A stretch of DNA of 64,000 nucleotides from positions 62,001 through 126,000 of IMG/VR virus record IMGVR_UViG_3300042879_006196; one strand, written 5' to 3'. The position numbers and the translations under genes are program-made. This document shows, piece by piece, positions 6,094 to 61,072 of the stretch. Below the pieces are notes generated by a model. That model was not told the origin of the DNA, did not search any database, and saw only the letters and a list, made by a program, of their open reading frames with translations. The first letter of the stretch is position 1. Every line of letters begins with the position of its first letter.

Positions 6094-6385
6094 ACAATTT
6101 AGGGGATAAATTCCCCTATTCCATTTTTTCCAGTTTTAACAAATTCTAGACAGAATAGGGGATAAATTCCCCTATTCCATTTTTTCCAGGTTTAACACAA
6201 TCTGAATTATAATGTATATACAGATTGTGGGGTGGGGTTTTTATTTTGCTATAGATAGCGAAAGGGGCACCTTTTTTTATTTTCAGATTGTGTCGTAGCC
6301 TATATATAGGGAGGGGGGGGAGGTTTTTCTCACACAATCTGACCCCCCCTTCTTTTTTCTAGGCCCCTCGTTTACACCGACACTA

Positions 6386-6503
6386 CACAATCTAAAAACC
6401 ACAATCTGAGAATCACAATCTAAAAACCACAATCTAAAAACCACAATCTAAAAATCACAATCTAAAAACCACAATCTGAGAATCACAATCTGAGAATCAC
6501 AAT
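6386..6503 (+). repeat. 14-bp tandem repeat with CACAATCT core, 8 full copies plus 1 partial
   Basis: CACAATCT at 6386, 6400, 6414, 6428, 6442, 6456, 6470 and 6484; partial at 6498. Confidence 0.95.
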
Positions 6504-6858
6504 TTTTTAGTTTATTTTTTTTATTCTCGGATCATAGGGGGGGTGTTTAAATTTAGGGGGGGTGTTTTAAAAAGGGTGTATAGATATATATACATATAGG
6601 GGTAAATTTTCGTATAATTAATAATGGTATACACGATTTTTCTTTTTCTAGCTATATATACAAATCTTTGTTTACTAGAAGCCTTGATACAATACAAAAC
6701 TTTTGTTTCTCGCTTAGGGTCATATTTAATGATTAAATATTTAAATTTCTTATCGTGGTTAAATTTCTTTACATACACAATCTGTCTTTTAAAGGGATCA
6801 CATTTGATAAATTTTTGATTAAAAAATAATTCCAGAAACACTGTTTTATGCATTTCCC

Positions 6859-6891
6859 CGTAATCTAAGAGCACAAGGATTTCGAATATAA
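6859..6891 (+). pseudogene. Remnant C-terminus of a Trp-repeat paralog
   Basis: Reads RNLRAQGFRI*, matching the ends RNLQAQGFPIKIY* and HNLKAQGFPM*. Confidence 0.6.
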
Positions 6892-6909
6892 ATTTAGTAA
6901 TTTAAGATT

Positions 6910-8466
6910 GTGTGGTATAGATATTGCAGATTAATTATAGCTGGCAAAGAACATATAATTAAAAAGATCATTGGTTATTTTAGAGAACAAGGGATTGGAC
7001 AAGTTGACTTAGATAATCTCCAACACAATCTGAATACCTTAGATAAGAATAATTTATTACCAGCGAGAATAGAACCTAGAAAAGATGGTGTATTTTTTGG
7101 TGATAGATTGTATGAAGATTTTTTAGAATTTCAAGAAATAGTGGATGGATTATATGGAGAATATAAATTAAGACAAAAAACAAAAGAACAAAAGAAATTA
7201 AGAGAAGAAAAAATAGAATTTGTTCCAGGTAAAACATCTGTTTATCCATGTAATAGTGTAAATGATGCGATCAAATATGGGGTTGGTACAGATTGGTGTA
7301 TTTCTCAACCTGGTAATGGAAATTATGATTCATATAGATCCGACTATCAATCTACATTTTATTATGTACAAGATAACACTAGACAATCTGATGATCCTTT
7401 ATCTAGAGTAATGGTGGATATACAAGCAAATGGTGTTGTCAAACTCACTGATATAAATAATACCACTGGTACAATAGCTGAATTTGGTACAGATTGGAAA
7501 AAGTATTTCGAGTATTTGGAAAAAAGTGGTGTAGATATTTCTCAATTTGTTAATAAACCTTTGACACAAGAAGAGATAGAAGAAAATAAGTTGATTGGTA
7601 AAGAAATAAATGATTTGGAGAAATTTGAAAAATTACCATTAGAATATAAATTCAAATACATTGGTCGTGGTCATTTATTAACGACAAAACAATTGGAGTC
7701 TATTATTAATCTTCAATCTGTTCATAGCAATGATGTAAAAAATACATTGATAAAACATTATTTAAAAACAGGAAGATCTTTACCAGCAATTCAAAAATTC
7801 ATTTTATTTGAAAGCAATCAAGGATGGAGAACAACATACATAAGAAGTAGAAAAATAGTAATAGATCAAATTAGAAAAAATTTATTGGATGACGACGAAG
7901 TAGCTCGCGAATTTCTAGATGCTGATGAAAGGGCTCTTTATGAAAATCCATTGAAATCAACAAATATTGTTGTGAAAAATATTGAAGATTTTGATTTTTT
8001 ATTAACTAAAGGTGTAAGTTTAAATCAGTTTAATTGGTCTAGTGTTTCTCAGATTCGTAATTTATCTGAAGATTTTATAAGAGAATATAAAGATAAAGTG
8101 GATTGGCTTGATATTTCTACTTATCCAAGATTATCTGAAGATTTTATCAGAGAATTTCAAGATAAGGTGTACTGGTGGATAATTTCTCAATATCAAACAT
8201 TATCTGAAGATTTTATAAGAGAATTTCAAGATAAGGTAAAATGGGGAACAATTTCTTACACACAGGAATTATCTGAAGATTTTATAAGAGAATTTAAAGA
8301 TAAGGTGGATTGGGAGAAAATTTCCAGATATCAAAAATTATCTGAAGATTTTATAAGAGAATTTAAAGATAAGGTGGATTGGTATTATATACGGTGGAAC
8401 GAGAATATTTCCGATGAAACCAAACGCAATCTGCAAGCACAAGGATTTCCTATAAAAATTTACTAA
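6910..8466 (+). CDS. MWY-start protein with KYGxGTxWC domain and 5 C-terminal 23-aa Trp repeats (paralog 1)
   Basis: LSEDFIREFxDKVxWxxISxxQx units at a 69-nt period (8062, 8131, 8200, 8269, 8338). Confidence 0.9.
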   Translation: MWYRYCRLIIAGKEHIIKKIIGYFREQGIGQVDLDNLQHNLNTLDKNNLLPARIEPRKDGVFFGDRLYEDFLEFQEIVDGLYGEYKLRQKTKEQKKLREEKIEFVPGKTSVYPCNSVNDAIKYGVGTDWCISQPGNGNYDSYRSDYQSTFYYVQDNTRQSDDPLSRVMVDIQANGVVKLTDINNTTGTIAEFGTDWKKYFEYLEKSGVDISQFVNKPLTQEEIEENKLIGKEINDLEKFEKLPLEYKFKYIGRGHLLTTKQLESIINLQSVHSNDVKNTLIKHYLKTGRSLPAIQKFILFESNQGWRTTYIRSRKIVIDQIRKNLLDDDEVAREFLDADERALYENPLKSTNIVVKNIEDFDFLLTKGVSLNQFNWSSVSQIRNLSEDFIREYKDKVDWLDISTYPRLSEDFIREFQDKVYWWIISQYQTLSEDFIREFQDKVKWGTISYTQELSEDFIREFKDKVDWEKISRYQKLSEDFIREFKDKVDWYYIRWNENISDETKRNLQAQGFPIKIY

Positions 8467-8504
8467 TTTTTGAACAAATCATATTTTTTATCGTATAATA
8501 ATAA

Positions 8505-8579
8505 TGCGGGGTGGAGCAGAGGTAGCTTGTCTGGCTCATAACCAGAAGGTCGTGGGTTCAAATCCCTCCCCCGCACCCA
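8505..8579 (+). tRNA. tRNA-Met(CAU), initiator-like scaffold, CCA encoded
   Basis: TGCGGGGTGGAGCAG..GGTAGCT.GTCTGG-CTCATAA-CCAGA..GTGGGTTCAAATCCC..CCCCGCA-C-CCA. Confidence 0.9.
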
Positions 8580-8580
8580 A

Positions 8581-8654
8581 GCTCCGATCGTCTAGCGGTT
8601 TAGGACATCGCTCTTTCACGGCGAAGATCACGGGTTCGAATCCCGTTCGGAGTA
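8581..8654 (+). tRNA. tRNA-Glu(UUC), no encoded CCA
   Basis: GCTCCGA/TCGGAGT acceptor; TCGCT-CTTTCAC-GGCGA anticodon arm; ACGGG-TTCGAAT-CCCGT T arm. Confidence 0.93.
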
Positions 8655-8677
8655 ATTAAAAAAGATTGGAATAAAAT

Positions 8678-9424
8678 ATGTATTTACCTTTATTAGCTTT
8701 TTCCCTTTTCACACAATCTACTTTAGATGACACACAATGTAGAAAGGCATTAAATGAAATTCTCCCTATGATGCGCACAACCAATGCTATGAGTTTTAGA
8801 TTAGAGGGGGAGAATGAATACAAGGGGTTTTTTACAAAATATTCGGGCAGTTTTAAATGGTTCAAAAATGAATCTGTGATAAAGTCAGAGTTAAAGTTAT
8901 CGCGAGATCAGATTGGCTTACAAAGAATTGTGGCTGATGGTAAAAAGATTTGGGCACACAATCTGCAAAGAAATGAATATACAGTGGCTCGTTATTCTTT
9001 AGAATTATCTGTGGGCGAAGATTACATGAAAAGATATATAAATGGTGTAAAGTACCCTGTGCTAGGGATGGGGCAACATTTAATGACACTTGCAGATCAG
9101 GTAGGTTTTGTATCACCTTCTCTCAAAGACTGGATTGGTGGTATTGAGTGGCAGGGAAAATTAGAAATAGATAAAAATAATTCTTTAAGAATTGTGAAGA
9201 GAATTTATCAGATTGTGGCTGATTATCGTTATGTGGTTTGGGAGCTTGAATCATTTGATGAGGGTGTCACATTTAATTTTTCAAGCATAAAGATTTACAA
9301 TAAAAGTTTTGATGGGTCAACCACCACCACATATCTTTATTTGGACGATTGTGTGGGTGCGGATCATTTAGGATTTAAATTTGTTCCTCCATCTGGCAGC
9401 AAAGTATTATGGATAAAAGATTGA
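8678..9424 (+). CDS. Secreted LolA/DUF2092-like beta protein
   Basis: Hydrophobic N-terminus; IVADGKKIWAHN...NEYT and C-terminal FKFVPPSGSKV motifs typical of the LolA fold. Confidence 0.6.
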   Translation: MYLPLLAFSLFTQSTLDDTQCRKALNEILPMMRTTNAMSFRLEGENEYKGFFTKYSGSFKWFKNESVIKSELKLSRDQIGLQRIVADGKKIWAHNLQRNEYTVARYSLELSVGEDYMKRYINGVKYPVLGMGQHLMTLADQVGFVSPSLKDWIGGIEWQGKLEIDKNNSLRIVKRIYQIVADYRYVVWELESFDEGVTFNFSSIKIYNKSFDGSTTTTYLYLDDCVGADHLGFKFVPPSGSKVLWIKD

Positions 9425-9460
9425 GAAGGAAGATTTTTTCTCATTCTATAATACTATACT

Positions 9461-9883
9461 ATGAACAAACACAATCTATTAAACAAAATAGCTTCAATTG
9501 CTACAGAACTCGACGTAAAAGGTTTCACAAAGGAAGCAAAGACCTTGGATAATGTGTTAATTAGAGTGGCGGATATTAATCCTGAAGAATATTGGGATAA
9601 AGAATGGAGAAGAGAGTTTCGTGAAGAAGAAAGAACTATTGTTCCAACAAAAAAAGTTTGGGAGTATGTTAAAAGCGCACACACTAAAGAATTAGAATAC
9701 GCACTTGAAGGTGGCGGCTTAGACGTGAAAAATTTTGCTGAATTTTGCTGGTCTTTAAAAGATGAAAATTTAAACAACATGATCAAAAATAGCCCAGATC
9801 TTAATTGGGCATGGTTGGAAGAAGCATTTATAGATCATTTGGAATATATTCAACATTCTAAGTTTGACTCAGAACCAGAATGA
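9461..9883 (+). CDS. Hypothetical protein with shared N-terminal IASxATELD.KG..KEA tag
   Basis: ORF; tag shared with the genes at 9976 and 20778. Confidence 0.8.
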   Translation: MNKHNLLNKIASIATELDVKGFTKEAKTLDNVLIRVADINPEEYWDKEWRREFREEERTIVPTKKVWEYVKSAHTKELEYALEGGGLDVKNFAEFCWSLKDENLNNMIKNSPDLNWAWLEEAFIDHLEYIQHSKFDSEPE

Positions 9884-9975
9884 TTAGGAGGGAGGCTAAT
9901 TTTACGATTAAGCTTCCCCCGAAAAGGTGCGCTTTTTCTAACGTAAATCAATTTTCACATTTAAAGGAGAAAAAA

Positions 9976-10551
9976 ATGAACAAACACAATCTGCTAAAAC
10001 GAATTGCTTCTGTTGCCACAGAGCTTGATATGAAGGGTTTCACTAAGGAAGCAAAACATTTAGATTCTATGCTTTTAAGGTTGGCTATGGATGATGACAT
10101 GCCTGAAATTGAAAAAAGTATTGATAGTGTCACTCCAACTTTTCAAGATTGGGAAGGTTTAAATGCCTTGAATGGTATTTTGATTAGTGTGCTTGGCGGT
10201 CGTAAAGATTTAGACAAAAATTACTATCATGGTGTTGACATTATCATGGATCTTGTTAATGATATTTTCACTGAGTTGAAAAACTTTAATAAATTAAATG
10301 CTAATGAAAATTTTGAACAAAAACAAGATTTGGGCATGGAAATAAAAATGCTTCTTGACACTGTTAGGGATGAGACAAAAGCTTTAATTAAAGAATTTAG
10401 AATTACTTTAGATATGGGTAGGCAAATAATTTTGGATCATGCTTATGATTTAGTGGACAAATTCAAAGATACAATAGATGATTTGTTGGATATGAGCTCT
10501 CTTGACTTTTTACCTAAAAATGATGAACAGTGGCCTGACAAACTGTATTGA
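9976..10551 (+). CDS. Hypothetical protein with shared N-terminal tag (start moved from 9880)
   Basis: AAGGAG SD before ATG 9976; MNKHNLLKRIASVATELDMKG. Confidence 0.8.
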   Translation: MNKHNLLKRIASVATELDMKGFTKEAKHLDSMLLRLAMDDDMPEIEKSIDSVTPTFQDWEGLNALNGILISVLGGRKDLDKNYYHGVDIIMDLVNDIFTELKNFNKLNANENFEQKQDLGMEIKMLLDTVRDETKALIKEFRITLDMGRQIILDHAYDLVDKFKDTIDDLLDMSSLDFLPKNDEQWPDKLY

Positions 10552-10590
10552 TTAAAAGGAAGAGCACCGCGCAAAATTTAAATATAGATT

Positions 10591-12891
10591 GTGTGGTATA
10601 GATATTGCAGATTAATTATAGCTGGAAAAGAACATATAATTAAAAATGTTATTAATTATTTTAGAGAACAAGGGGAGTCTGAAGTAAATCTAAATGAAAT
10701 CTCACAGAAACTAAATGTTTTAGATAAATCACAAAAATTGCCAATTATTGAAAGAAGAAAAAAAAGTATTTTTTTTAATAATCAAGAATTCACCAAATTT
10801 CTTGACTTTTCAGAAAAAGTGGATCGTTTATTTTCTGAACATTTACGAAATGAAAAAACAAAAGAACAAAAAAAAATACAGAAAGAAGAAAAAACAGAAT
10901 TCATTCCAGGCAAAATATCTGTTTATCCATGCAAAAATGTAAATGATACAATCAAATATGGCGCTGGTACAAGTTGGTGTGTTTCACAGCCTGGTAATAA
11001 CATGTATGATAGTTACAGAAATCAAAGTGCGTCCACATTTTATTACATTCAAGATGGAACAAGAGATTCTAGTGATCCATTATCAAGGGTAATGTTAGAT
11101 GTACAAGATGGCGATGAAATTACATTAACTGACACAGATAATGACACTGGCGCTATAGCTGAATTTGGCACAAATGTAGATGCTTATTTAGATTATTTAG
11201 AAAACAATGGCGTAAACACTGCTCAGTTTGTCAATAAACCTTTGACAAATGAGGAAAGAGAAGAATTTCGAATATTAGGTCAAAGAAATAATGATTTAGA
11301 ATGGTTTGAAAATTTAAGTTTAGATTATAAATTCAAATATATTGGAAGAGGTCATCGTTTAACAGATGAACAGCTTTCATCAATTATAAATTTAGAATCT
11401 GTTGACACAAAAAAGATTGCATTAGAATTAATTAATGATTATGTTAACACAGGCTTAAATTTACCTTTAAATCAACAAAAAATTCTATTTGAAATTAATC
11501 CACAAATTCAAAAAACCTATAAAAGAAGAAGAGCAATTGCAATTGAAGCAATTAAGAAATATTATTTTAATAATACATATGAATTAAAAAATTATGCTTT
11601 ACAAAATAAAGATCTTGAATTGATTGATTCAATTATTGAAGAAAAAGGTATTGAAGCATTCAAAAATGCGAGGGCAGCTCAGCCTGTAATTGAATATTTA
11701 TTATCAAAAGGCTTGGACCCTAGTTATGTGAAATGGCAAGACATGTATTTAGAAAAATTATCAGAAGACTTTATAATCAAATACATCAACTTTTTAGACA
11801 TTAAGCGTATATCTCACTATCAAAAACTATCTGAAGATTTTATAAGAAAATATTCAGATCTTGTTGATTGGCGAAATATTTCATATTTTCAAAAATTGTC
11901 AGAAAATTTTATTGAAGAATTTAAAGATCGCGTAGATTGGCAAGAAATTTCAAGCAGACAAATATTATCTGAAGATTTTATAAGAAAATTTCAAGATAAG
12001 ATAGAACAAAGCAGATCATGGTCTGAAATTACACAATATCAAAATTTATCTGAAGAATTTATGGATGAATTTCAAAATAAATTAGATTGGGAAAAACTTT
12101 CAGATTACCATGAAAATAGAAAATATGGACAGAAACTTTCAATTGAATTTCTTTTAAGGCATAAAGATAAAATTGATTGGGAAACATATTCACGTAAATA
12201 CGGTGCCAATATCGCTGAGGAATATTTGAGAGCTCTCAAATATTATATACACTGGGATAAAGTAAGTTATCATAATGTATCTGATGAATTTTTGTTTGAA
12301 TTTGAAAATTATATAAATTGGAAAAAAGCAGCGAGCACAAAAGAAAATATCCCTGAAATTTTACTCCGAAGACACGCTGATGATTTAAATTGGTATCATA
12401 TTTCAGCTTTCCAAACATTATCTGAAGATTTTATAAGAGATTTTGCTGATCGTTTTAATTGGGTTTTTATTTCTCAACATCAAAAATTATCTGAAGATTT
12501 TATAAGAGAATTTAAAGATAAGGTGGATTGGTATTATATTTCTGAATATCAAACATTATCTGAAGATTTTATAAGAGAATTTCAAGATAAGGTAAAATGG
12601 GGAACAATTTCTGTATATCAAAAATTATCTGAAGATTTTATAAGAGAATTTCAAGATAAGGTAGTTTGGCATTTTATTTGTAGATATCAAACATTATCTG
12701 AAGATTTTATAAGAGAGTTTCAAAATAAGGTATATTGGGCAGAAATTTCTCAAGATCAAAAATTATCTGAAGATTTTATAAGAGAATTTCAAGATCGTGT
12801 AAAATTGCATTATTTATTGCGAAATGAAAACCTTTCTGATGAAATCAAACACAATCTGCAAACAAAAGGTTATCAAATAAAACATTTTTAA
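10591..12891 (+). CDS. MWY-start Trp-repeat protein (paralog 2, about 15 repeats)
   Basis: Same N-terminus and KYGAGTSWC domain as paralog 1; long repeat array. Confidence 0.9.
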   Translation: MWYRYCRLIIAGKEHIIKNVINYFREQGESEVNLNEISQKLNVLDKSQKLPIIERRKKSIFFNNQEFTKFLDFSEKVDRLFSEHLRNEKTKEQKKIQKEEKTEFIPGKISVYPCKNVNDTIKYGAGTSWCVSQPGNNMYDSYRNQSASTFYYIQDGTRDSSDPLSRVMLDVQDGDEITLTDTDNDTGAIAEFGTNVDAYLDYLENNGVNTAQFVNKPLTNEEREEFRILGQRNNDLEWFENLSLDYKFKYIGRGHRLTDEQLSSIINLESVDTKKIALELINDYVNTGLNLPLNQQKILFEINPQIQKTYKRRRAIAIEAIKKYYFNNTYELKNYALQNKDLELIDSIIEEKGIEAFKNARAAQPVIEYLLSKGLDPSYVKWQDMYLEKLSEDFIIKYINFLDIKRISHYQKLSEDFIRKYSDLVDWRNISYFQKLSENFIEEFKDRVDWQEISSRQILSEDFIRKFQDKIEQSRSWSEITQYQNLSEEFMDEFQNKLDWEKLSDYHENRKYGQKLSIEFLLRHKDKIDWETYSRKYGANIAEEYLRALKYYIHWDKVSYHNVSDEFLFEFENYINWKKAASTKENIPEILLRRHADDLNWYHISAFQTLSEDFIRDFADRFNWVFISQHQKLSEDFIREFKDKVDWYYISEYQTLSEDFIREFQDKVKWGTISVYQKLSEDFIREFQDKVVWHFICRYQTLSEDFIREFQNKVYWAEISQDQKLSEDFIREFQDRVKLHYLLRNENLSDEIKHNLQTKGYQIKHF

Positions 12892-12900
12892 TTTAAGATT

Positions 12901-14598: not shown

Positions 14599-14634
14599 AT
14601 TTAGAAATCATACATCATTTTAAATATCTATAAA

Positions 14635-15785: not shown

Positions 15786-15822
15786 AGTATATATTTTACT
15801 GGAAATGTGTCAACAAAACATT

Positions 15823-51142: not shown

Positions 51143-51240
51143 CTTTTTTTATTTCTCATACGTATATATATTTAGTTCGTCTCCTCTAGTAGACCAAAGA
51201 ACTGTTTTTTGCGCAAAAGGATTTGCGTAATAAGGAATAT

Positions 51241-52980: not shown

Positions 52981-53955
52981 ATGCTATTTGAAGAACAATT
53001 ATCAAGAAAACCTAATCTATATCCTTGGACACAGGGATTTATCGACGTTATGGAAGAAGGACACTGGACAGCCAAAGAATTCAATTTTCAAAGCGACTTG
53101 CATGATTATAAAATCACATTCAATGATGAAGAAAGAGAAGTGATCAAAAATACTCTTTCAGCTATTGCACAAATTGAAGTAGCTGTTAAAAAGTTTTGGT
53201 CAAAAGTTGGAGATAATTTTCCACACCCAAGCATTAATGATTTGGGAGTGGTAATGAGTCATGTGGAAGTAATTCACAACATTGCTTACGAAAAACTCTT
53301 AAATGTATTAAATTTAGATGATGTGTTTGAAGAAAATCTCAAGCTTGACATCATCAAGGGCAGAGTTAAATATTTACGAAAGTACACACATAGATATTAT
53401 GAAAATTCTAAAAAACAATATCTTTATGCATTAGTGCTTTTTACTCTTTTTGTAGAAAATGTTTCATTGTTTTCTCAATTTTATGTTATCAATTGGTTTA
53501 ACAGACACAAAAATGTTTTGAAAGATACTGCACAGCAAGTGGCATATACTGCCAAAGAAGAGACTGTACATGCTTTGGTAGGTATTAAGCTCATCAATAC
53601 AGTTAGAAATGAGTATCCTGAATTATTTGACCAGGAGTTTGAACAAAAAATCTTGTCAGAAACTGTTGAGGCTTTCGAGTGCGAAGCTAAAATTATTGAT
53701 TGGATTTTAGGTGATTATTCTGGTGAAAAACTATCTACCAATCATTTGAAAGAATTTGTCAAGGACAGATTGAATCAATCACTAGCTGCTATTGGGTTCA
53801 AAGAAGTTTTTGAAGACATAAATAAAGAGATTTTAGCGGAGACAGAATGGTTTAACGAAGATGTGCTCGGTAATACCAACACAGACTTTTTCTATGCTCG
53901 TCCAGTAAATTACTCTAAAGGAAACAAGAGCTATGACTCAGAGGAGCTTTTTTAA
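52981..53955 (+). CDS. nrdB: Ribonucleotide reductase class I beta subunit
   Basis: HW...E, QIEV, EVIH..AY, EN.SLF, E..H and DFF motifs. Confidence 0.92.
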   Translation: MLFEEQLSRKPNLYPWTQGFIDVMEEGHWTAKEFNFQSDLHDYKITFNDEEREVIKNTLSAIAQIEVAVKKFWSKVGDNFPHPSINDLGVVMSHVEVIHNIAYEKLLNVLNLDDVFEENLKLDIIKGRVKYLRKYTHRYYENSKKQYLYALVLFTLFVENVSLFSQFYVINWFNRHKNVLKDTAQQVAYTAKEETVHALVGIKLINTVRNEYPELFDQEFEQKILSETVEAFECEAKIIDWILGDYSGEKLSTNHLKEFVKDRLNQSLAAIGFKEVFEDINKEILAETEWFNEDVLGNTNTDFFYARPVNYSKGNKSYDSEELF

Positions 53956-55604
53956 TGAAGAATATTGAATGGCTTAATGAAGATTCCCGCACGTTTCTTG
54001 CCAGAGGGTATTTAAGAGAGGGCGTAGAACCTGAAGATCGTATCAAAGCTATTGTTGAGACTGCCAGTAAATATCTTTATAAAATTGAAGATTTCAAAGA
54101 AAAATTTGAAGATTACTTAGCTAGGGGTTTTTATTCTTTGGCTTCTCCAGTTTGGAGTAATTATGGAGAGTCCAGAGGTTTACCAATCAGTTGCAATGGT
54201 CAATACATTGATGACTCTATGGACGACATTCTTTATTGTAATGGAGAAACTGGAATGATGACAAAACATGGCGCTGGCACTTCTGCTTATTTTGGAGCTT
54301 TGAGGGGTCGTGGAAGTGATATTTCTGCTGGAGGTAAATCATTTGGATCAGTGCATTTCATGCAAATGTATGATACGACAACAAGAATTGTAAGTCAATC
54401 TAATGTTAGAAGAGGTTCGTTTGCGGCTTATTATCCAATTGAAGGTCCAGATATTCTTGAATTTTTAGAAATTAGAGAAAATGGAAACGCAATTCAAGAC
54501 ATGAGCATTGGAGTCACCATCACTGATGAATGGATGAAAGCCATGAAAGATGGAGATAAAGACAAAAGAAAACTTTGGGCTAGAGTTATTAAAAAACGCT
54601 TTGAAACTGGCTATCCATATATCTTTTGGACTGATACAGTGAACAAAAACGCACCTCTTTGGTATAGAGACAAAGGTATGAAAATTCATGCGTCTAATCT
54701 CTGTTCTGAAATTTGCTTACCATCTGATGTTGAGAACTCTTTTGTGTGTGATCTTTCATCTATGAATTTGCTAAACTTTGAGAAATGGAAGGATACAGAT
54801 GCTGTAGAAATTCTCACTTATTTCCTTGATGCTATTATGGAAGAGTACATAGAAAAAACAAAAGATTTACCTTTCATGAAAAAAGCTCACAATTTTGCAA
54901 AAAATCATAGAGCTTTAGGACTTGGTGGTTTGGGTTGGCATTCATATTTACAATCCAAGATGATTGCATTTGAATCCACAGAAGCAAAAATTAAAAACAC
55001 TCAAATTTGGAAGTTGATCGAAGAAAAAACTATTTTAGCTTCTAAGAAAATGGCAGAACTATATGGAGAACCAGCTGTTCTTAAGGGCTACGGTATGCGA
55101 AACTCCACATTAGTTGCAGTTGCGCCTACCACTTCATCTTCTTTCATATTAGGGCAAGTGTCTCCAAGCATTGAGCCACTTAATTCAAACTATTTTGTTA
55201 AAGACTTAGCTAAAGGAAAATTTACATACAAGAATCCTTTCCTTAAAGAAGTGCTTGCGAAGTATGACAAAGATGATTCAGCAACTTGGAAAACTATTAT
55301 GGTGCATGGTGGTTCTGTTCAACATCTTGATTTCTTAACTGAAAATGAAAAAATGGTATTCAAGACTTTTGGAGAAATTTCACAAAAAGAAATTGTAATC
55401 CAAGCGGCGGCTAGACAAAAGTATATTGATCAAAGTCAAAGCTTAAACTTAATGATTCATCCTGACACTTCTCTCAAAGATGTTAATGAATTAATGATTT
55501 TTGCTTGGGAATCAGGAATAAAAACATTGTATTACCAAAGAGGGACTAATCCAAGTCAAGAATTGGCGAGAAATTTATTAAACTGTGTTAGCTGTGAAGC
55601 GTAA
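53955..55604 (+). CDS. nrdA: Ribonucleotide reductase class I alpha subunit (no ATP cone)
   Basis: PISC, SNLCSEI, APT.SS, DQSQS.N, KTLYY and C-terminal CVSC. Confidence 0.93.
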   Translation: MKNIEWLNEDSRTFLARGYLREGVEPEDRIKAIVETASKYLYKIEDFKEKFEDYLARGFYSLASPVWSNYGESRGLPISCNGQYIDDSMDDILYCNGETGMMTKHGAGTSAYFGALRGRGSDISAGGKSFGSVHFMQMYDTTTRIVSQSNVRRGSFAAYYPIEGPDILEFLEIRENGNAIQDMSIGVTITDEWMKAMKDGDKDKRKLWARVIKKRFETGYPYIFWTDTVNKNAPLWYRDKGMKIHASNLCSEICLPSDVENSFVCDLSSMNLLNFEKWKDTDAVEILTYFLDAIMEEYIEKTKDLPFMKKAHNFAKNHRALGLGGLGWHSYLQSKMIAFESTEAKIKNTQIWKLIEEKTILASKKMAELYGEPAVLKGYGMRNSTLVAVAPTTSSSFILGQVSPSIEPLNSNYFVKDLAKGKFTYKNPFLKEVLAKYDKDDSATWKTIMVHGGSVQHLDFLTENEKMVFKTFGEISQKEIVIQAAARQKYIDQSQSLNLMIHPDTSLKDVNELMIFAWESGIKTLYYQRGTNPSQELARNLLNCVSCEA

Positions 55605-55612
55605 GAGGAATT

Positions 55613-56017
55613 ATGAATAATGAATATGTTGAAAGAGTGGTAAAAATATTAGATGCAGAAGTAAAACAGGATTTAGGAGATAATGAAAATCCAAAATTCA
55701 AGCAATCTTTAGTTCTATTACTTCAAGATATTGAAAATAATGAAGTTTTCAAAACAATTCTTCAAGAAGAAGATATCAGAAAAATTGTAAGAATTAACTC
55801 TCCACTCACCAGCAAGCAACTCATTGATCTTTGTATTTTGCTAAGACAAAGAGAGGAACCATTAAGATTGATGGTTCCTCAGTCATCTTTTGAAATTTCA
55901 GCAGATGACATTTTAAAAAATACTCAACCTCCTAAAAAAAATAGAAGACGTAAAAGAAATTCAAGAAATAGAAAAAAAATCTATCAATCAAACGATAATA
56001 ATCGTAAAATAAATTGA
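55613..56017 (+). CDS. Hypothetical protein with basic C-terminus
   Basis: GAGG SD; ORF. Confidence 0.65.
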   Translation: MNNEYVERVVKILDAEVKQDLGDNENPKFKQSLVLLLQDIENNEVFKTILQEEDIRKIVRINSPLTSKQLIDLCILLRQREEPLRLMVPQSSFEISADDILKNTQPPKKNRRRKRNSRNRKKIYQSNDNNRKIN

Positions 56018-56472
56018 TGGATAATTACATTGAATTAGCACTAAGAACCGAACCTACAACAGAACAATATGAAGAAATTCTGAAGCGCGTAGGTAATCCA
56101 GAAATCATTCGACTTTTACATGCTTTTATGGGTCTCAGCACTGAAGCAGGAGAAATTGTAGATGCACTTAAAAAGCACATATTTTACGGAAAAAATTTAG
56201 ATTTAATTAATATTGCTGAGGAACTTGGAGATTGTGAATGGTACGAAGCAATTGCAGTAGATGCTTTATCTAAGCTACTTAATCGCGAACCAAAAGATCT
56301 CGAAAACACAATCAAGGAAATTAACATCAAGAAATTGCAAGAGCGATATCCTGAGAAATTTTCTGAACAAAGTGCCATACACAGGAATATTGATGCAGAA
56401 AGAGACATTTTAGGTGCTGTTGAAGATCCTAAAAAAATGATCAGATATGGCTCAGGAGAAGCAAATGCCTAA
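56017..56472 (+). CDS. MazG-like nucleotide pyrophosphohydrolase
   Basis: GL.TEAGE..D..KK, EELGD.WY and N..KL..RYP motifs. Confidence 0.85.
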   Translation: MDNYIELALRTEPTTEQYEEILKRVGNPEIIRLLHAFMGLSTEAGEIVDALKKHIFYGKNLDLINIAEELGDCEWYEAIAVDALSKLLNREPKDLENTIKEINIKKLQERYPEKFSEQSAIHRNIDAERDILGAVEDPKKMIRYGSGEANA

Positions 56473-56938
56473 GACTATCCACTACACAGAATCTAAAGAG
56501 CTGAAAGAATTAGCCAAAAAACTGCGTGGAGCGTATGTAAATGTTATTGGGTATGTTGATTTAGAAAAAATATTTTTTGCTTTTAAGGGTGGTGATGTAA
56601 ATGATGATTTTCAATACGAAGTGCTAGGGCTAAAAAATGAATGGGTAAAACACACCTCTAGTAAAGGCGACGAACCAAAAGTATACTGTATTGCTTTTGC
56701 ATTTGATGCCTATCAACAAGCTTTAGGTTCACAGCTTGAATGGATTTTGTTAGAAGCTTTATATTCTTGTCATCCACTTATGGATGGAAAATTAAGAAGA
56801 AAAGATGTTCATCAATACTCAAGATTTTTAAAAACTCTTGAAGATCTGGGAGAAAGTTTTACATGGAGAGCAAACAATCACTTGCCTTCTTTACTTGGTG
56901 ATGAAACCATTGTATTTGCATTAGAGGAAGATGAATGA
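56447..56938 (+). CDS. Hypothetical protein (degenerate phage metallopeptidase-like fold)
   Basis: Overall pattern similar to that family, but HEXXH is replaced by LEALY. Confidence 0.4.
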   Translation: MAQEKQMPKTIHYTESKELKELAKKLRGAYVNVIGYVDLEKIFFAFKGGDVNDDFQYEVLGLKNEWVKHTSSKGDEPKVYCIAFAFDAYQQALGSQLEWILLEALYSCHPLMDGKLRRKDVHQYSRFLKTLEDLGESFTWRANNHLPSLLGDETIVFALEEDE

Positions 56939-57912
56939 GCTTATATAATAAATATAGACCAAATACTTTTGAGAATTTAATACAATCTAAATTTAATAAA
57001 GGTTTTACAAAAGATTCTCTCACACATCATGCATACATGTTTTTTGGTTCTCCAGGAACAGGTAAGACTTCAACTTCCAGGCTGTGTATGGCTGAATTTT
57101 TAGATGATAAAGAAAAAAATTTGGCTATAAATGGTACTCATCCAGACTACATTGAGGTAAATTGTGCCGTCAATAATGGTGTAGATGATATCAGGAACAT
57201 AATCTCAGATATTATCAATACAATGCCTGTGCAAAGCAAATACAAATTTATCACATTTGATGAATGCCACATGCTTACTACACAATCTCAAAATGCATTG
57301 TTAAAAACTGTAGAAGAGCCGCCTAAGCATGTTAAGTTTTTTTTCTGCACTACAGAAGTTAATAAAGTTCTTCCTGCAATCAGATCAAGATGTCAACTTG
57401 TTCCATTTATTAAGTTGAATGAAAAATCTCTAATAAAAATTTTAGAAAATATATGTAAAGGAGAGAATTTCAGCTATAATCAAGAGTGCCTTAAGCTAAT
57501 TTCAAGTTGTGCTGATGGCTCTGCAAGATCTGCAATCAATTTGTTAGAGCAATGTTGCTCTGTTCTCAATGATGAAGATGCTGTGGCTCAGATCGTCGGC
57601 ACTTCAAGTGAAAGCAATTTTTTCAATCTTACAAAATTCATTTGTAACAAAAATAAAAATCAAAGTTTAATTCTATTGGAAGAAATTTTTAATAATTCAA
57701 TTGACCCAGGAAGTTTAATGAATAAGTATGCTGATTTTATAGCTGAACAAATTTTAAACAGAGTGAGTGATCCAGCAAAGTGTGAATTTGAAGGCAAAAA
57801 GCTTTTAATTATTGCAGATTGTGTGACAGAAATATTAAAAGATTTTAAAATTTTGCAAAATATAAAACTTATTTCTAAAATAAACGTATTAAAAGCAATA
57901 GAAAAAATGTAA
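56935..57912 (+). CDS. dnaX: DNA polymerase III gamma/tau clamp-loader subunit
   Basis: LYNKYRP, GSPGTGKT, DECHML, NALLK.VEEPP and SRC motifs. Confidence 0.9.
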   Translation: MSLYNKYRPNTFENLIQSKFNKGFTKDSLTHHAYMFFGSPGTGKTSTSRLCMAEFLDDKEKNLAINGTHPDYIEVNCAVNNGVDDIRNIISDIINTMPVQSKYKFITFDECHMLTTQSQNALLKTVEEPPKHVKFFFCTTEVNKVLPAIRSRCQLVPFIKLNEKSLIKILENICKGENFSYNQECLKLISSCADGSARSAINLLEQCCSVLNDEDAVAQIVGTSSESNFFNLTKFICNKNKNQSLILLEEIFNNSIDPGSLMNKYADFIAEQILNRVSDPAKCEFEGKKLLIIADCVTEILKDFKILQNIKLISKINVLKAIEKM

Positions 57913-57942
57913 TTCTGCAAATTTATTTGTAAAATTACATAG

Positions 57943-58662
57943 ATGGTTGAAACGGATCTAATTCTTCACGCTCTTGTAGTAAAAGCTAAAAATGGTGACC
58001 AAAGGTCTTTTGATCAAATATTAACAATCCTTGACCCCGATATTAAAAAATTAGCCCACAAATATTACATCGTCGGCAGTGATGAAAACGATGTAATCCA
58101 AGAGTGTAGAATTGGGGTTTGGAAAGCAGTGAAAGATTTTGATGATTCAATGGGCATGACTTTTAAAAACTTCAGTTTGAGTTTGTGTTGCAAGAGGCAT
58201 TTAATCACTGCAATGTCTCATGCAAACACACAAAAATTCAAACTTCAAAATGAAGCTGTATCATTAAGTGCCCCTGTTTCTTTAAATGAAGAAGATGGGA
58301 TTCAAACTTATGCAGATTATATTCCAGATCAAAATTCTGATTTGTTAGAAAATTATATAATTCAAGAAGAATTTGAAACTAATTTAGGGCTTATTTCAGA
58401 CAAACTTACTAAATTAGAAATGTCAATATTTACACAATATGCCTATAATTCTTCTTATAAAGACATTGCAAAAGCACTTGATGTCAAACCAAAAACTGTT
58501 GATAATGCTTTGATGCGAATTCGTAAAAAAAGCGCGGAATCTTACCAAATATATTTGACTTCATTTTCTCAAATTAATATTGGTATAGCTTCGTATATTA
58601 ACTTACATGAAGGCGAAATTATACAAGAATTTATTGGAATCAGCACTTTCACGATGCTTTGA
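57943..58662 (+). CDS. sigH: SigH-like RNA polymerase sigma factor
   Basis: D.IQE..IG.WKA..DF, C.KR.LITA..A..QK...N..VSL and SY..IA......K.VDNAL.RI.KK match SigH signatures. Confidence 0.85.
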   Translation: MVETDLILHALVVKAKNGDQRSFDQILTILDPDIKKLAHKYYIVGSDENDVIQECRIGVWKAVKDFDDSMGMTFKNFSLSLCCKRHLITAMSHANTQKFKLQNEAVSLSAPVSLNEEDGIQTYADYIPDQNSDLLENYIIQEEFETNLGLISDKLTKLEMSIFTQYAYNSSYKDIAKALDVKPKTVDNALMRIRKKSAESYQIYLTSFSQINIGIASYINLHEGEIIQEFIGISTFTML

Positions 58663-59701
58663 TGCTTGTGAAAAAAAAACTGCTGAATCATTGACACAAT
58701 TCATATTTGAAAATGACAAGCTAATTTTATCAGCTAAGGGCTATTTCACTTATTATGAAGAATGTATAGATTTTATTGAATGCTCTGAAAATGCTATGTT
58801 CACTGTTAAAACAGCAACAATTTTAGAATTCGTTAAACATGTATCCTCAGATTGTGTATTATTGGCTTTTGATGAAGAAAAGAAATCATGTTTAATCTCA
58901 AGTTCTGATAAGAAATCAAAAATAGCTCTGCAAGTGTCAGACACTTCCATAGAAAACAATATTAAATCTGAATATAGTGTCAATTTCAGTTCAGAAAATC
59001 CGCATGAAATTATTTCAAAACTTAATTTTGCTTCTAAGTTTTGCTCAAATAATTTTCAAGACCATCCTTTATCGGCAATTCATTGTGAGATTGACATAAA
59101 CGCATTCAACATCAAAAGCACAAATGGTCCTTCATTTTACTCATCTAGTTTGCCAATTACATCAAGCTCGGCAATGGAGATATTTTTGCCCAAAAAAGCC
59201 CCTGCTATTTTGAAAAATGTTTTTCACGAGCAATTATTCAATAAATGCTCGTTCGATAAACGCTCTGTTTTGTTTGAATCTGACAAATGTAAGCTCACAT
59301 TTTTCGTTGAACAAAGTAATTCAACATTTCCCGACCAAGTTAGGGAATGGATTAAAAAAGATTCTAATGCAAAAATTAAAGCATCAGTTTATGAGTTATC
59401 TAAAACTCTGAAGTTTTTCAATGGTGTATTCAATGAATCATCTGTTAATTTCAACATTAAAGATGGAAAGCTTAATTTAGAATCGAAAGAAAATAATCTA
59501 GCCGCTAAAGAAAACGTGGCAACCGAAGAATGCACAGGTGATGCTACTTCGGCTTACAACTCAAAATACTTCTTGGATTGCTTAGAATCTCTACAATCAT
59601 CTTGGGTAAATCTTGATTTTATAGAAATGAGTGAAAGTTTCTACATTTGTAAACTCACTCACGGTAGCACATTAATATTACTATGTCCAACTATATTTTA
59701 G
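58607..59701 (+). CDS. dnaN: DNA polymerase III beta sliding clamp
   Basis: About 364 aa; STNG, FPD, YNSKYFLD and terminal LCP motifs; next to dnaX. Confidence 0.75.
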   Translation: MKAKLYKNLLESALSRCFDACEKKTAESLTQFIFENDKLILSAKGYFTYYEECIDFIECSENAMFTVKTATILEFVKHVSSDCVLLAFDEEKKSCLISSSDKKSKIALQVSDTSIENNIKSEYSVNFSSENPHEIISKLNFASKFCSNNFQDHPLSAIHCEIDINAFNIKSTNGPSFYSSSLPITSSSAMEIFLPKKAPAILKNVFHEQLFNKCSFDKRSVLFESDKCKLTFFVEQSNSTFPDQVREWIKKDSNAKIKASVYELSKTLKFFNGVFNESSVNFNIKDGKLNLESKENNLAAKENVATEECTGDATSAYNSKYFLDCLESLQSSWVNLDFIEMSESFYICKLTHGSTLILLCPTIF

Positions 59702-60531
59702 AAGGAGAATCTTTTTTTATTCTTGAGAAGCTTTACGAGTTGACAGAAGGTAAAAAGATTGAAATTAACCCAGAGAAAATTAATCCGTTTTCACTTTTTG
59801 GAAATGTGGATTACTATGTATTTTTTGATCCAGATAAAGAAACTATTGAGTCAATTAATTTCAATAACTTCATTTTGTGTTTCATGGACAAAAATGTTGA
59901 TTTGAGGTTAGATTACATTAAGCGCATAAAGCAAATATCCACTATCAAAACATTTGATCCAATACCAACTACAGATTTTCAAACATTGAAAGAAATTTTT
60001 CCAAATATTACTCAGCCAAATTCTTTGCCAAGTAAAAAAGGAAACTTAAAATATAACGGATCAAAACAAAATTATGAGTGGTTTGACTTATGCTTAATAA
60101 ACGATTTATATTCTTTTGATGATCAAAAAATTTACCAATTAGTTTTTGATTCATATTTTGATATATGGAGATTTACAGATGATTTGTGGTGTGGAAGCAC
60201 AAAATGCTTATCGCAGATTAGATATATTAATGAAAAGAATTTTGAAGATTATTTTAATAGAATAAGAGAAACTTCAAAAGATTATATTGAACTAATACAA
60301 ACACAATCTAAAAACTTCTACTTGCACAAACAAGCGTACAGCTCTACATCAATTACAAATGAATTTAGATTCAGTAAAATAAGAGAAAAATTAATTTTAT
60401 TAAAACCAAATTCAGAAAATTTTGTATTAAGTTTATTTGAAGAATGTTTAAAAAATGTAAGATTAGGTTCAAACCCGAAATTAGAAATGATAAAACTTTT
60501 TTTCAAATTTAAACAAAATGTATCAAAATGA
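59683..60531 (+). CDS. Divergent clamp-loader delta (HolA)-like protein
   Basis: YILEGESFFI start and SLFG motif; located in the clamp operon. Confidence 0.5.
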   Translation: MSNYILEGESFFILEKLYELTEGKKIEINPEKINPFSLFGNVDYYVFFDPDKETIESINFNNFILCFMDKNVDLRLDYIKRIKQISTIKTFDPIPTTDFQTLKEIFPNITQPNSLPSKKGNLKYNGSKQNYEWFDLCLINDLYSFDDQKIYQLVFDSYFDIWRFTDDLWCGSTKCLSQIRYINEKNFEDYFNRIRETSKDYIELIQTQSKNFYLHKQAYSSTSITNEFRFSKIREKLILLKPNSENFVLSLFEECLKNVRLGSNPKLEMIKLFFKFKQNVSK

Positions 60532-61072
60532 CTATTTACATATAGATTCTTTAGTAGCTAAAGTTAAAGAAAACAACACAGACGCACTGTGGGAGCTTTT
60601 TGACTTCTACAAGCCAATAATTAATGTGTGCGTGAATAAAGTACACTCAAAATATAAAACCGTTGAAAAGGATGATTTATTTTCAGAATGTATTTTCATT
60701 TTCAAAGACTTATGTATGAAATATGAAAAAGATAAGTGTTATTTTTCTTATTATTTAGATACAAGGCTTCAGCCATACTTAGTTTCAAAAGTAAAATCAA
60801 AATATATAGATAAAATTAACATTGTCACACTTAATGAGCATGAGCACTACGATCAAGAGGAATTTCTTGGTTATTTTGATGGCAATCCAGTGTTAGAAAA
60901 AGCAATCAATAGCCTACCAGAAAAAACTAAACATATTATTGACTTATTTTACTTCAAGAATCTAACACAATCTGAATGTGCGGTTGTGTTGAAAATTTCT
61001 CAACCAGCATTTAACAAAAAACTTCATAAGGCTTTGGAAATTTTAAGAAAAAATATGGAAAAAGAGTTATAA
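60518..61072 (+). CDS. Sigma-70 family sigma factor
   Basis: DDL.SE, FSYY, LPEK...I.L.Y...LTQ.ECA..L.ISQ region 4 HTH. Confidence 0.85.
   Translation: MYQNDYLHIDSLVAKVKENNTDALWELFDFYKPIINVCVNKVHSKYKTVEKDDLFSECIFIFKDLCMKYEKDKCYFSYYLDTRLQPYLVSKVKSKYIDKINIVTLNEHEHYDQEEFLGYFDGNPVLEKAINSLPEKTKHIIDLFYFKNLTQSECAVVLKISQPAFNKKLHKALEILRKNMEKEL

Follow-up and report, generated by a model that had tools for sequence, protein, structure and literature searches.

The 9-letter DNA word ACACAATCT/AGATTGTGT is present in hundreds of exact copies in a 347-kb jumbo phage. It is found in the spacers of the many small-gene promoters of this phage, in two clusters that bracket this promoter block, and scattered inside genes. 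On sequence evidence alone, the word looks like the binding site of one phage regulator, and it is unusual for being so numerous and so often inside genes.

Excess and exactness of the word

The window (the whole stretch of 64,000 nucleotides analysed, which is part of the phage genome) holds 46 exact copies, 34 on the plus strand and 12 on the minus strand, against 0.78 +/- 0.93 in dinucleotide-preserving shuffles, with a maximum of 4. Ten copies lie in cassette promoters (345-6195) and 36 lie elsewhere. CACAATCT is the most frequent 8-mer of the whole window, with 62 copies. However, not all 46 copies are independent: ten are copies of one promoter family, three are the identical 5' ends of paralogous genes (6905, 10586, 12896), and two further pairs are paralogous (9469/9984 and 12849/14565), leaving about 30 independent copies. 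The observation made in an earlier note, a dispersed and strongly over-represented 9-mer embedded in genes, is confirmed. All the coordinates listed in that note are correct, only 6385 being omitted from its examples, and so are the frames and peptides that it gave (HNL, TQS, DCV, RLC, IV). Its claim that density is highest at 6-26 kb holds within the window (1.1 per kb against 0.29 per kb further right), although denser regions lie outside it.

The excess survives codon-aware null models, a check that had been set beforehand. There are 27 copies inside CDS from 6.9 kb onwards, whereas a synonymous-codon shuffle gives 4.3 +/- 1.9 (maximum 10 of 500) and a codon-order shuffle gives 0.68. The tripeptides HNL, TQS and DCV are themselves 4-8 times in excess and are almost always written with the codons of the motif. 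The DNA word has therefore shaped the protein sequences.

In the 162 kb of the phage genome that were read (46.6% of the total, including the structural module) there are 216 copies, and the word is present in every region sampled. In 106 kb free of arrays there are 66 copies against 2.1 expected, and no other word comes close. The word is sharp, since 58 exact copies compare with 70 copies in total across all 27 single-mismatch variants, for which 44 are expected. There is no strand bias: orphan copies are 54 minus and 46 plus overall and are balanced in every region.

Promoters, boundary clusters and genes

The features of the window are collected in the table below. The word sits next to the -10 box, in the spacer, in three unrelated promoter families, in either orientation and with a gap of 2-5 nt. 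These are the cassette promoters; four promoters reading AAC-N17-CGTATA, which resembles an ECF sigma promoter pattern; and a promoter at the left boundary reading AGATTGTGT-ATCG-TATAAT. A variant is found at window position 6195. The cassettes form a 35-kb block of 62 promoter-ORF-terminator units, bracketed by clusters of 12-13 copies. Of these 62 otherwise near-identical promoters, 28 have the word and 34 carry other letters in the same slot, indicating that the word is a modular regulatory add-on and that, as far as can be inferred from sequence, the promoter works without it. Eight promoters have a perfect dyad, AGATTGTGT-N12-ACACAATCT, centred on the -35-like TTTCCA.

Features carrying, or lacking, the word (window coordinates unless stated otherwise)
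Position	Strand	Feature	Details
345..4630	+	Nine cassette promoters with the word in the spacer	Copies start at 345, 1008, 1290, 1765, 2455, 2790, 3271, 3933 and 4622. Context TTTTCCAGGTTTA-ACACAATCT-GAT-TATAAT-AGAT-ATG, with -35-like TTTCCA, an 18-nt spacer and a perfect TATAAT. The ATG lies 4 nt after the -10 box with no Shine-Dalgarno site, a leaderless-type geometry (inferred)
135..5840	+	Eight sister cassette promoters without the word	CCAGGTTTAA starts at 135, 2241, 3524, 5109, 5172, 5628, 5717 and 5805. The same slot holds ACAAAACCT, ACATTTCCT, ACATTTTCT or ACATTTTCG. The rest of the promoter is invariant and only the 4-nt core CAAT is replaced
6186..6510	.	Right boundary cluster at the end of the cassette block, 12 core copies	Promoter copy at 6195, imperfect inverted partner at 6221-6229, inverted pair at 6285(-)/6332(+), direct array from 6385. 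Non-coding, rich in G and C runs. A matching cluster of 13 core copies lies at the left end of the block (contig about 33.2-33.7 kb, positions 380-830 of the sequence L005)
6386..6503	+	Tandem array of 8.4 units with a 14-bp period	CACAATCT followed by AAAAAC or GAGAAT. A T-rich tract follows at 6504-6530. Absent from the corresponding region of the relative L241
6905..6913	-	Copy overlapping the start codon (AGATT-GTG-TGG-TA) of the Trp-repeat gene 6910-8466	Same arrangement at 10586-10594(-), 12896-12904(-), 18471-18479(+) for the minus-strand gene 15823-18474, and 19439-19447(+) for the minus-strand gene 18840-19442. In each case a stop codon closes the open reading frame a few codons upstream, so the start must lie within or next to the word
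12849..12857	+	Copy 11 codons from the end of gene 10591-12891	Similar gene-end copies at 14565-14573(+), 8 codons from the end of 12901-14598, and at 15825-15833(-), overlapping the stop codon of 15823-18474. Three genes are thus bracketed by AGATTGTGT at the start and ACACAATCT at the end
9469..9477	+	Copy 8 nt after the ATG (ATGAACAAACACAATCT) of gene 9461-9883	The paralogue has the same arrangement at 9984-9992
43262..43270	+	Copy inside DnaE	The only intragenic copy conserved in position in both close relatives. The sequences L023, L024 and L025 all read ACAAAAACACAATCTTCC at this point
6775..60973	.	Remaining dispersed orphan copies	Starts at 6775, 7023, 8711, 8956, 15450, 18242, 19965, 21420, 21549, 22751, 24520, 25505, 32146, 33601, 42169, 42264, 47415, 57280, 57816, 58849, 60301 and 60965. 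All three frames and both orientations

Comparison with relatives shows that the word is kept while individual sites turn over. A relative at about 73% nt identity keeps TTTCCA, the 18-nt spacer and TATAAT in its cassette promoters. Although the other spacer bases have diverged, it retains the core CACAATCTGA, shifted 2 bp, together with the upstream CAGATTGT. This is the behaviour of an operator and not of a polymerase contact. In contrast, copies inside conserved genes appear and disappear by single point substitutions within otherwise collinear sequence.

Orphan copies are 2.7 times enriched within 30 nt of gene boundaries (40% against 15%, p about 6e-5) and are also enriched near start codons. 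Nevertheless, 41 of 57 orphan copies lie inside genes, including late structural genes, with 23 sense and 18 antisense (binomial p = 0.53). Among 56 orphan copies, no position outside -10 to +16 carries information and no TAnnnT signal appears at any offset, so that a sigma-type promoter element with a partner box at a fixed distance is not supported for these copies.

A possible operator and competing readings

The reading that we consider best, although only about as likely as not, is that ACACAATCT, or more fully (A/C)ACACAATCTGa with core CACAATCTGA, is the recognition site of a single sequence-specific DNA-binding protein, probably encoded by the phage and most likely a global repressor. 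This protein could bind an isolated asymmetric site as a monomer and could also occupy direct and inverted pairs, which fits the variety of arrangements observed (direct repeats at 10 and 14 bp, inverted pairs at N12, and single sites). Its clearest role would be at an operator: the site lies 2-5 nt upstream of the -10 box, and in some promoters a second inverted copy lies on the far side of the -35 box, so a bound protein would block RNA polymerase. The phage could thereby switch off, or time, a large set of promoters together, comprising about half of the 62 cassette promoters, the ECF-type family, the left-boundary promoter and many gene 5' ends. In this view, the two boundary clusters would be high-occupancy anchors, serving as roadblocks or insulators against read-through or as looping partners. 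The hundreds of single sites inside genes would act together rather than individually, keeping the protein concentrated on phage DNA, serving as auxiliary or looping sites, or titrating the protein as the genome replicates. The statistics, the positions in promoters, the conservation of the word with turnover of individual sites and its modular presence or absence are established by the analysis, whereas protein binding, repression, the function of the intragenic sites, and the terms early and leaderless are inferred from sequence.

Several facts do not fit easily with this reading. Pfam or PHROGs scans of about 80 ORFs, 53% of the genome not being covered by the DNA read, found no classical repressor (including none with HTH and Stoperator domains), ParB or initiator, and the only DNA-reading proteins found were two ECF-like sigma factors. 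A plain promoter repressor does not need sites inside genes, where about 70% of the orphan copies lie. Individual sites are not conserved between relatives, and the word is much sharper than typical transcription-factor site sets.

The interpretation offered in the earlier note, a genome-marking system (parS-like or nucleoid coating, self-recognition, Chi-like or packaging signal) read by one sequence-specific protein that also touches the early promoters, is partly supported. Selection acts on the DNA and not on the protein, the single sharp word points to one reader, and this reader would touch the early-type promoters. However, the specific analogies are not supported. A packaging signal does not fit hundreds of dispersed sites. 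A parS-like site is usually a palindrome present in few copies and read by a ParB, whereas this word is asymmetric and most copies are single sites with no nearby partner. The tandem array that inspired the centromere or nucleoid idea is missing from the close relative. The candidate proteins that the note proposed found no support either: the Trp-repeat proteins carry 4-10 repeats and look like DUF4116/LRV helical repeats, and the products of 42065 and 51223 gave nothing informative.

Among the alternatives, a genome-marking scaffold is unlikely but survives best. The word would nucleate a phage protein that coats, bridges, tethers or segregates phage DNA, like KorB/ParB, Noc or SlmA, with the two clusters as main loading sites and promoter repression as a side role, as it is for KorB. 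Sites without orientation preference cover every sampled region, including late genes, they are maintained in number but not in position, and density falls with distance from the clusters, each of which has 12-13 sites. On the other hand, the site is not a palindrome, no ParB-like or Noc-like protein was seen in the ORFs scanned, the array is not conserved in the close relative, and lower density in core genes can equally be explained by stronger protein constraint. The ParB-like reading is thus weakened but not excluded. In a bolder form, also unlikely, the word would be a phage "self" mark: a dedicated protein would recognise hundreds of exact sites in genes of every temporal class and so distinguish, concentrate on, organise or protect phage DNA against the host chromosome, operator activity being only one output. 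This would be a virus-encoded counterpart of chromosome-wide site systems such as Noc, SlmA, MatP or uptake sequences, maintained by selection on site number rather than position.

A recombination signal is less likely still. In this reading, a recombinase or nuclease would recognise the word, or the word would act as microhomology, driving shuffling and amplification of gene cassettes in the manner of PeSL or integron sites and accumulating at module boundaries. The word does lie at the borders of all the tandem gene families (cassettes, mini-genes and Trp-repeat paralogues), it brackets whole genes as inverted copies, none of the 26 copies in the 22.6 kb next to the array lies in DNA that aligns with the relative, and the cassette architecture matches PeSLs (PMC2839356). 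However, in conserved genes the sites do not change at insertion or deletion junctions, nine base pairs is too short for homologous exchange, no recombinase was found in the ORFs scanned, and the position at the -10 box in either orientation remains unexplained.

Replication initiator boxes, such as DnaA boxes or plasmid iterons, are slightly less likely again. Direct arrays would form one or two origins, inverted pairs would be autoregulatory operators and dispersed boxes would titrate the initiator. The direct array is indeed followed by a T-rich tract, there are two clusters about 35 kb apart, and single asymmetric 9-mers, arrays and promoter sites together resemble DnaA-box usage. Nevertheless, the array is absent from the relative, the AAA+ gene ahead of the helicase loader is a Cdc48-like unfoldase and not an origin binder, GC skew follows gene direction only, and dozens of small-gene promoters carrying an initiator box would be unusual. 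This reading is weakened but not excluded.

A signal for host machinery, Chi-like or uptake-signal-like, that the host also carries and that was acquired or selected in the phage to exploit or evade host DNA uptake or recombination-nuclease systems, is very unlikely. The statistics do look like those of an uptake sequence (an exact word, about 0.3-1 per kb, both orientations, all frames, distorted peptides and positional turnover), and the uptake-signal reading is weakened but not excluded. However, Chi predicts strand polarity, which is not seen, and uptake sequences do not sit in promoter spacers or form arrays. A scan of 185,579 species' genomes for closely spaced pairs of the motif returned scattered taxa and microsatellites and no genome with dispersed enrichment, which is only a weak negative. 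Phages with 51-54% DnaE identity have none in 385 kb. Equally improbable are site-specific nick or modification sites like the nicks of phage T5, at which a phage nickase or modifying enzyme would act, perhaps to load a sliding clamp that could activate late transcription: the sharpness of the word suits an enzyme site and the clamp loader, sigma, clamp and second sigma genes are adjacent, but there is no direct evidence, enzyme target sites are not usually over-represented, and neither the spacer position nor the dyads are explained.

Comparison with other dispersed site systems

Dispersed asymmetric operators read by monomeric phage repressors have documented precedents, at 20-30 sites per genome, in P1 and in L5-type temperate phages. 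The phage P1 has 22 C1 operators with an asymmetric 17-bp consensus, scattered around a large genome and controlling many promoters through one protein (PMC8546580). P1 operators are at promoters, whereas here most copies are inside genes, are ten times more numerous and turn over quickly, and no C1-like protein was identified in the ORFs scanned.

L5-type phages (cluster A mycobacteriophages, gp71-type repressor) have more than 20 operator and stoperator sites (PMC9283540). As in the present case, an asymmetric site is read as a single unit, many copies are spread over the genome, including copies at the early promoter, and the same word is kept across related phages. However, stoperators lie in short intergenic spaces and their orientation follows transcription, and the orphan copies described here fail on both points. 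In addition, there are hundreds of copies rather than 20-30, arrays and dyads are present, the word is 9-11 bp rather than 13 bp, and nothing indicates that this phage is temperate.

What differs here is that one word reaches 216 copies in the 47% of the genome that was read, that most of them are inside genes, and that the word is strong enough to bias the phage's own protein sequences while being kept exact. If one regulator reads it, this would be a very simple handle on gene timing in an uncultured jumbo phage, a single 10-bp word marking about half of a 62-promoter block of small unknown genes, a second promoter class and more than 60 tandem mini-genes, as well as a portable operator-repressor pair for Bacillota-type promoters. 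If the intragenic copies have a collective role, it would be the first virus example of a chromosome-wide site system. The word is also a practical marker for recognising fragments of this phage lineage in metagenomes.

KorB, a ParB-family protein of plasmid RK2, uses dispersed OB sites both to repress many promoters and to organise the replicon, as one protein would do here. However, OB sites are 13-bp palindromes and there are only 12 of them, while the present word is asymmetric and no ParB-family protein was seen in the parts scanned. The uptake sequences (USS and DUS) of Pasteurellaceae and Neisseriaceae share the statistical signature, with an exact 9-12-mer at about 1 per kb, but they belong to bacterial genomes and are maintained by uptake bias, whereas the present word is phage-specific as far as tested.

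With respect to the carrier structures, the 62 cassette junctions match the PeSL promoter-terminator cassettes of T4-type phages, in which a strong sigma70-like promoter plus a stem-loop terminator is repeated between small non-essential ORFs in a plastic region (PMC2839356, PMC4122927). This does not hold for the orphan copies. A PeSL is the whole 50-60 bp cassette junction, whereas the word is a 9-11 bp optional part of such junctions that also occurs by the hundred outside them.

Abundance and distribution of the word

The word ACACAATCT and its complement AGATTGTGT occur 46 times in the window (34 copies on the plus strand and 12 on the minus strand), whereas dinucleotide-preserving shuffles give 0.78 +/- 0.93 copies, with a maximum of 4. 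The observation made in the earlier note, a strongly over-represented and dispersed 9-mer embedded in genes, holds, and all the copy positions that it listed are correct. CACAATCT is the most frequent 8-mer of any kind in the window. By contrast, the ATCTGAAGAT repeats are just 23-aa protein repeats.

The codon-aware comparison that had been proposed beforehand as a test was carried out with the 27 copies that lie inside coding sequence from 6.9 kb onwards. A synonymous-codon shuffle that keeps every protein sequence gives 4.3 +/- 1.9 copies, with a maximum of 10 in 500 shuffles, and shuffling of codon order gives 0.68. The tripeptides encoded by the word in its different frames (HNL, TQS, DCV) are 4-8 times in excess and are almost always written with the codons of the word. 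Copies occur in all three frames and in both orientations. Therefore, selection is on the DNA. However, not all copies are independent, since ten belong to one promoter family and seven more lie in paralogous segments.

The window belongs to the 347,392-bp IMG/VR contig IMGVR_UViG_3300042879_006196, a jumbo phage that is present, identical, in many JGI, ENA and NCBI metagenome assemblies. By means of pattern hits and walks, 162,012 nt of this genome (46.6%) were read, covering contig positions 332.5-347.4 kb, 2.7-9.3 kb and 12.9-153.5 kb. This sequence holds 216 exact copies of the word, whose density varies among regions.

Density of exact copies of the word by contig region (the last two rows come from a separate count)
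Region (contig)	Copies per kb
Block of more than 60 tandem mini-genes, 14.4-33 kb	3.7
Left boundary cluster, 550 bp	18
Cassette block, 33.7-68.2 kb	1.8
Right boundary cluster, 340 bp	11.8
Accessory genes, 68.5-88 kb	1.13
Replication module, 88-126 kb	0.29
126-153 kb, including the portal and structural genes	0.44
332-347 kb	0.9
2.7-9.3 kb	1.4

In 106 kb free of all arrays and repeat families there are 66 copies against 2.1 expected under a third-order Markov model, and no other word comes near this. A second enriched word or a multi-word code was also considered, but the alternative words of the promoter slot are not enriched as orphan copies. The word is sharp. In 88.8 kb there are 58 exact copies, while the 27 single-mismatch variants together total 70, against 44 expected. 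It extends weakly to (A/C)ACACAATCTGa. Orphan copies are balanced in orientation (54 minus and 46 plus).

No relatives at the DNA level were found in INPHARED. In IMG/VR, the cassette promoter string, with or without the word, occurs only in this contig, and the pattern of the array gave only single chance hits in other contigs. A literature search for the word returned only primer lists.

Contexts of the word and comparison with related phages

A 35-kb block holds 62 rightward units, each composed of a terminator hairpin, a sigma70-like promoter and a small ORF. The promoter reads TTTTCCAGGTTTA-ACACAATCT-GAT-TATAAT-AGAT-ATG, with a -35-like TTTCCA, an 18-nt spacer and a perfect -10 box. The start codon lies 4 nt after TATAAT with no Shine-Dalgarno site, which suggests leaderless mRNAs. 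Twenty-eight promoters carry the exact word, and the other 34 are near-identical except that the 4-nt core is replaced, giving ACATAATCT, ACATTTCCT, ACATTTTCT, ACAAAACCT and others. Eight promoters also have a perfect inverted partner, AGATTGTGT-N12-ACACAATCT, centred on the -35 box, and others have a degenerate partner. None of the 10 cassette ORFs scanned has a Pfam domain.

The word is also present in other promoter families. Four promoters read AAC-N17-CGTATA with the word inside the spacer, a pattern that resembles that of ECF sigma promoters, although other GCGTATA -10-type sites lack the word. At the left boundary of the cassette block, AGATTGTGT-ATCG-TATAAT precedes a possible 300-nt non-coding RNA, which is followed by a strong terminator and has a folding z-score of -2.3 and no convincing Rfam match. 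The word therefore abuts the -10 box in either orientation, with a 2-5 nt gap, in unrelated promoters.

The cassette block is bracketed by two non-coding clusters, with 13 core copies on the left and 12 on the right. The left cluster has 3.5 units of 46 bp, each with two copies 10 bp apart, plus five more copies, whereas the right cluster has a promoter copy, an inverted pair and the array with a 14-bp period. The boundary region at the right is rich in long G and C runs, such as GGGAGGGGGGGGAGG and GGGGGGGTGTTT repeats. An Rfam search of the boundary regions returned only tRNAs.

Many copies are found at the 5' ends of genes. At least 66 tandem, translationally coupled mini-genes of about 50-60 aa, a very large paralogous family without assigned function, start ATG ATT AAT ACA GAT TGT GTG (MINTDCV), which contains the word, and continue with tetrapeptide repeats of the type xQVW, xQVR or xQVE (12-nt period GATCAGGTGTGG). 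Each is preceded by an AGGTG Shine-Dalgarno-like site. Five window genes have their GTG start inside the word, and other genes carry it between the Shine-Dalgarno site and the ATG, directly after the ATG, or 8 nt after the ATG.

Of 57 orphan copies in array-free DNA, 41 are intragenic (23 sense, 18 antisense) and 16 are at boundaries. Forty percent lie within 30 nt of a gene boundary, against 15% at random (p about 6e-5), and 25% lie within 30 nt of a gene start, against 9% at random. No -10-like or other element accompanies them at any fixed distance.

Two IMG/VR contigs with 82-83% DnaE identity, about 73% at the DNA level, carry the same word, with 6 and 2 copies in the 23 kb around DnaE, 10 in 15.5 kb near the CCA enzyme, and 11 in L241, a locus that reaches the relative's own cassette block. 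Only the DnaE site is conserved in position, the other sites being gained and lost by point substitution inside collinear coding sequence. In the variable region next to the array, none of the 26 sites lies in alignable DNA.

L241 gave the most informative result. Its promoters read cCAGATTGTttttCCAtctgtCACAATCTGAaggTATAATagatatATG, so that the -35 box, the -10 box and the 18-nt spacer length are kept while the other spacer bases have diverged. The core word is retained but sits 2 bp further from the -10 box, the start codon lies 6-8 nt after TATAAT, and some cassettes lack the word, as in the window phage. The boundary region of this relative is also non-coding and rich in G runs, a character conserved although the sequence is not, and it has four exact copies, two of them just downstream of TATAAT boxes, but no tandem array.

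Phages with 51-54% DnaE identity have no copies in 385 kb (loci L026-L043), where base composition predicts about 5. This could be avoidance or chance, and the loci are partly redundant. More distant phages are at chance. An analogous word was also sought in more distant relatives, but the repeated word of one locus (L114) is a protein repeat, another (L115) has none, and the apparent excess in the group with 26-32% DnaE identity comes from near-duplicate loci carrying chance copies.

Interpretation of the word

The simplest account of all the promoter evidence is that the word is an operator. It is optional in the promoter, it is conserved as a word while its surroundings drift, it tolerates a small change of register and either orientation, and it lies where a bound protein must collide with RNA polymerase. 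Single sites, direct pairs at 10 and 14 bp, and dyads at N12 all suggest a protein that recognises one asymmetric site and can also multimerise. The feature itself is real, strongly non-random and lineage-specific, whereas binding, repression, early timing and leaderless starts are all inferred from sequence. Pfam or PHROGs scans of about 80 ORFs, from a genome of which more than half was not read, gave no repressor, ParB or initiator, and no protein that would read CACACAATCTGA was identified. Only a few small clade-restricted ORFs, mentioned in the table, came from a presence/absence comparison around DnaE, and they are a lead rather than a result.

Documented precedents are the 22 asymmetric C1 operators of P1 (PMC8546580) and the more than 20 operator and stoperator sites of L5-type phages (PMC9283540). 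However, the word does not fit the stoperator class on two defining points, since its orientation does not follow transcription and most sites are intragenic. It is best described as a new, very large-scale form of the dispersed asymmetric operator theme, with an unexplained intragenic component that could prove more novel.

The intragenic copies are the unusual part. They are numerous, exact, without orientation preference, not conserved in position, and present even in late genes. That is the signature of a collective function, or of selection on number, as seen for bacterial uptake sequences or chromosome-wide site systems, and not that of individual regulatory sites. For this reason, the operator and global regulator reading is considered about as likely as not, and a genome-marking reading is kept as a less likely possibility. 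The interpretation of the earlier note, a genome-marking system read by one sequence-specific protein that also touches early promoters, is only partly supported. Selection does act on the DNA, as it had proposed, but its candidate proteins received no support. For instance, the Trp-repeat proteins were considered as modular, TALE-like readers, but their repeat number varies (5, 10 and 4) and the repeats look like DUF4116/LRV helical repeats.

Among the other readings, an iteron origin is weakened by the absence of the array in the relative and by the lack of an initiator among the ORFs scanned, the AAA+ protein considered for this role being Cdc48/VCP-like. With respect to a host-wide word, a scan of 185,579 species' genomes for closely spaced pairs found only scattered chance hits and microsatellites, a weak negative because the scan was only partial and the host is unknown. 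A Chi-like signal is disfavoured by the lack of polarity. Recombination scars are contradicted by point-mutation turnover in collinear genes, although the cassette junctions themselves resemble the PeSL cassettes of T4-type phages (PMC2839356). A promoter element (-35 or -10) for the phage sigma factors is excluded for the orphan copies by the absence of a partner element at any offset.

Other features of the phage genome

The phage carries its own replication and repair genes, coding for DnaE, DnaB, a DnaC-like loader, a split DnaG primase, clamp and clamp loader, RecA, RecJ and an SbcCD-like nuclease. It also carries ribonucleotide reductase, a CCA/polyA polymerase with an HD domain, a Cdc48-like AAA+ protein, two TnpB genes and two ECF-like sigma factors. 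The Atlas neighbours of one sigma factor are mostly Bacillota, which hints at the host phylum. The sigma factor genes are interleaved with the clamp-loader and sliding-clamp genes, and the AAC-N17-CGTATA promoters may be their target. The copies of the word that flank the two TnpB elements are inconsistent in distance and orientation, showing no consistent relation between these genes and the word.

Location of features of the phage genome (window: contig positions 62,001-126,000; L001-L006, L103, L105, L106 and L107: further loci of this phage)
Feature	Location	Remarks
Tandem mini-genes	L105 about 1600-6665 and L107 (contig about 14.4-33 kb); also L005 1-340	MINTDCV family
Left boundary cluster	L005 380-830	
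Possible non-coding RNA	L005 838-1135 (contig about 33.65-33.95 kb)	
Cassette block	contig 34.2-68.2 kb (L005, L003, L004, L002, L106, L006, L001; window 1-6200)	
Right boundary cluster	window 6186-6510	
Non-coding boundary region with G and C runs	window 6230-6600; L241 7600-7900 (relative)	
AAC-N17-CGTATA promoters	contig 342.9-344.3 kb	Four promoters with the word
GCGTATA -10-type sites	4.1, 7.6, 8.1 and 13.6 kb	Without the word
ECF-like sigma factor genes	window 57943-58662 and 60518-61072; L103 about 10380-11750	Two genes, interleaved with clamp-loader and sliding-clamp genes
Trp-repeat proteins	window 6910-8466, 10591-12891, 12901-14598	Three paralogues
Small ORFs restricted to the motif-bearing clade	32724-33845 and 35919-36182	
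Cdc48/VCP-like AAA+ protein	37486-39090	
TnpB (OrfB_IS605 / Cas12f-like) genes	window 61879-63069 (-); L103 8904-10067 (-)	
tRNA genes	window 2128-2201, 8505-8579, 8581-8654; L105 1087-1161	Arg-TCT (inside the cassette block), Met-CAT and Glu-TTC; a further Met-CAT upstream of the mini-gene block
Hsp70/DnaK, superoxide dismutase, AAA+ ATPase and split DnaG primase	L103 1192-3072 (-); window 20781-21470 (-), 37486-39090, 41264-41785 and 48675-49400	

The three Trp-repeat paralogues share a conserved N-terminal domain of about 370 aa and carry 4-10 copies of a 23-aa repeat, LSEDFIREFKDKVDWxxISxYQx, which is DUF4116/LRV-like by language-model similarity. The cargo of the phage is unusual, since it includes a full-length Hsp70/DnaK, an Fe/Mn superoxide dismutase and the Cdc48/VCP-like AAA+ ATPase, and the DnaG primase is split into separate zinc-ribbon and Toprim genes 7 kb apart.
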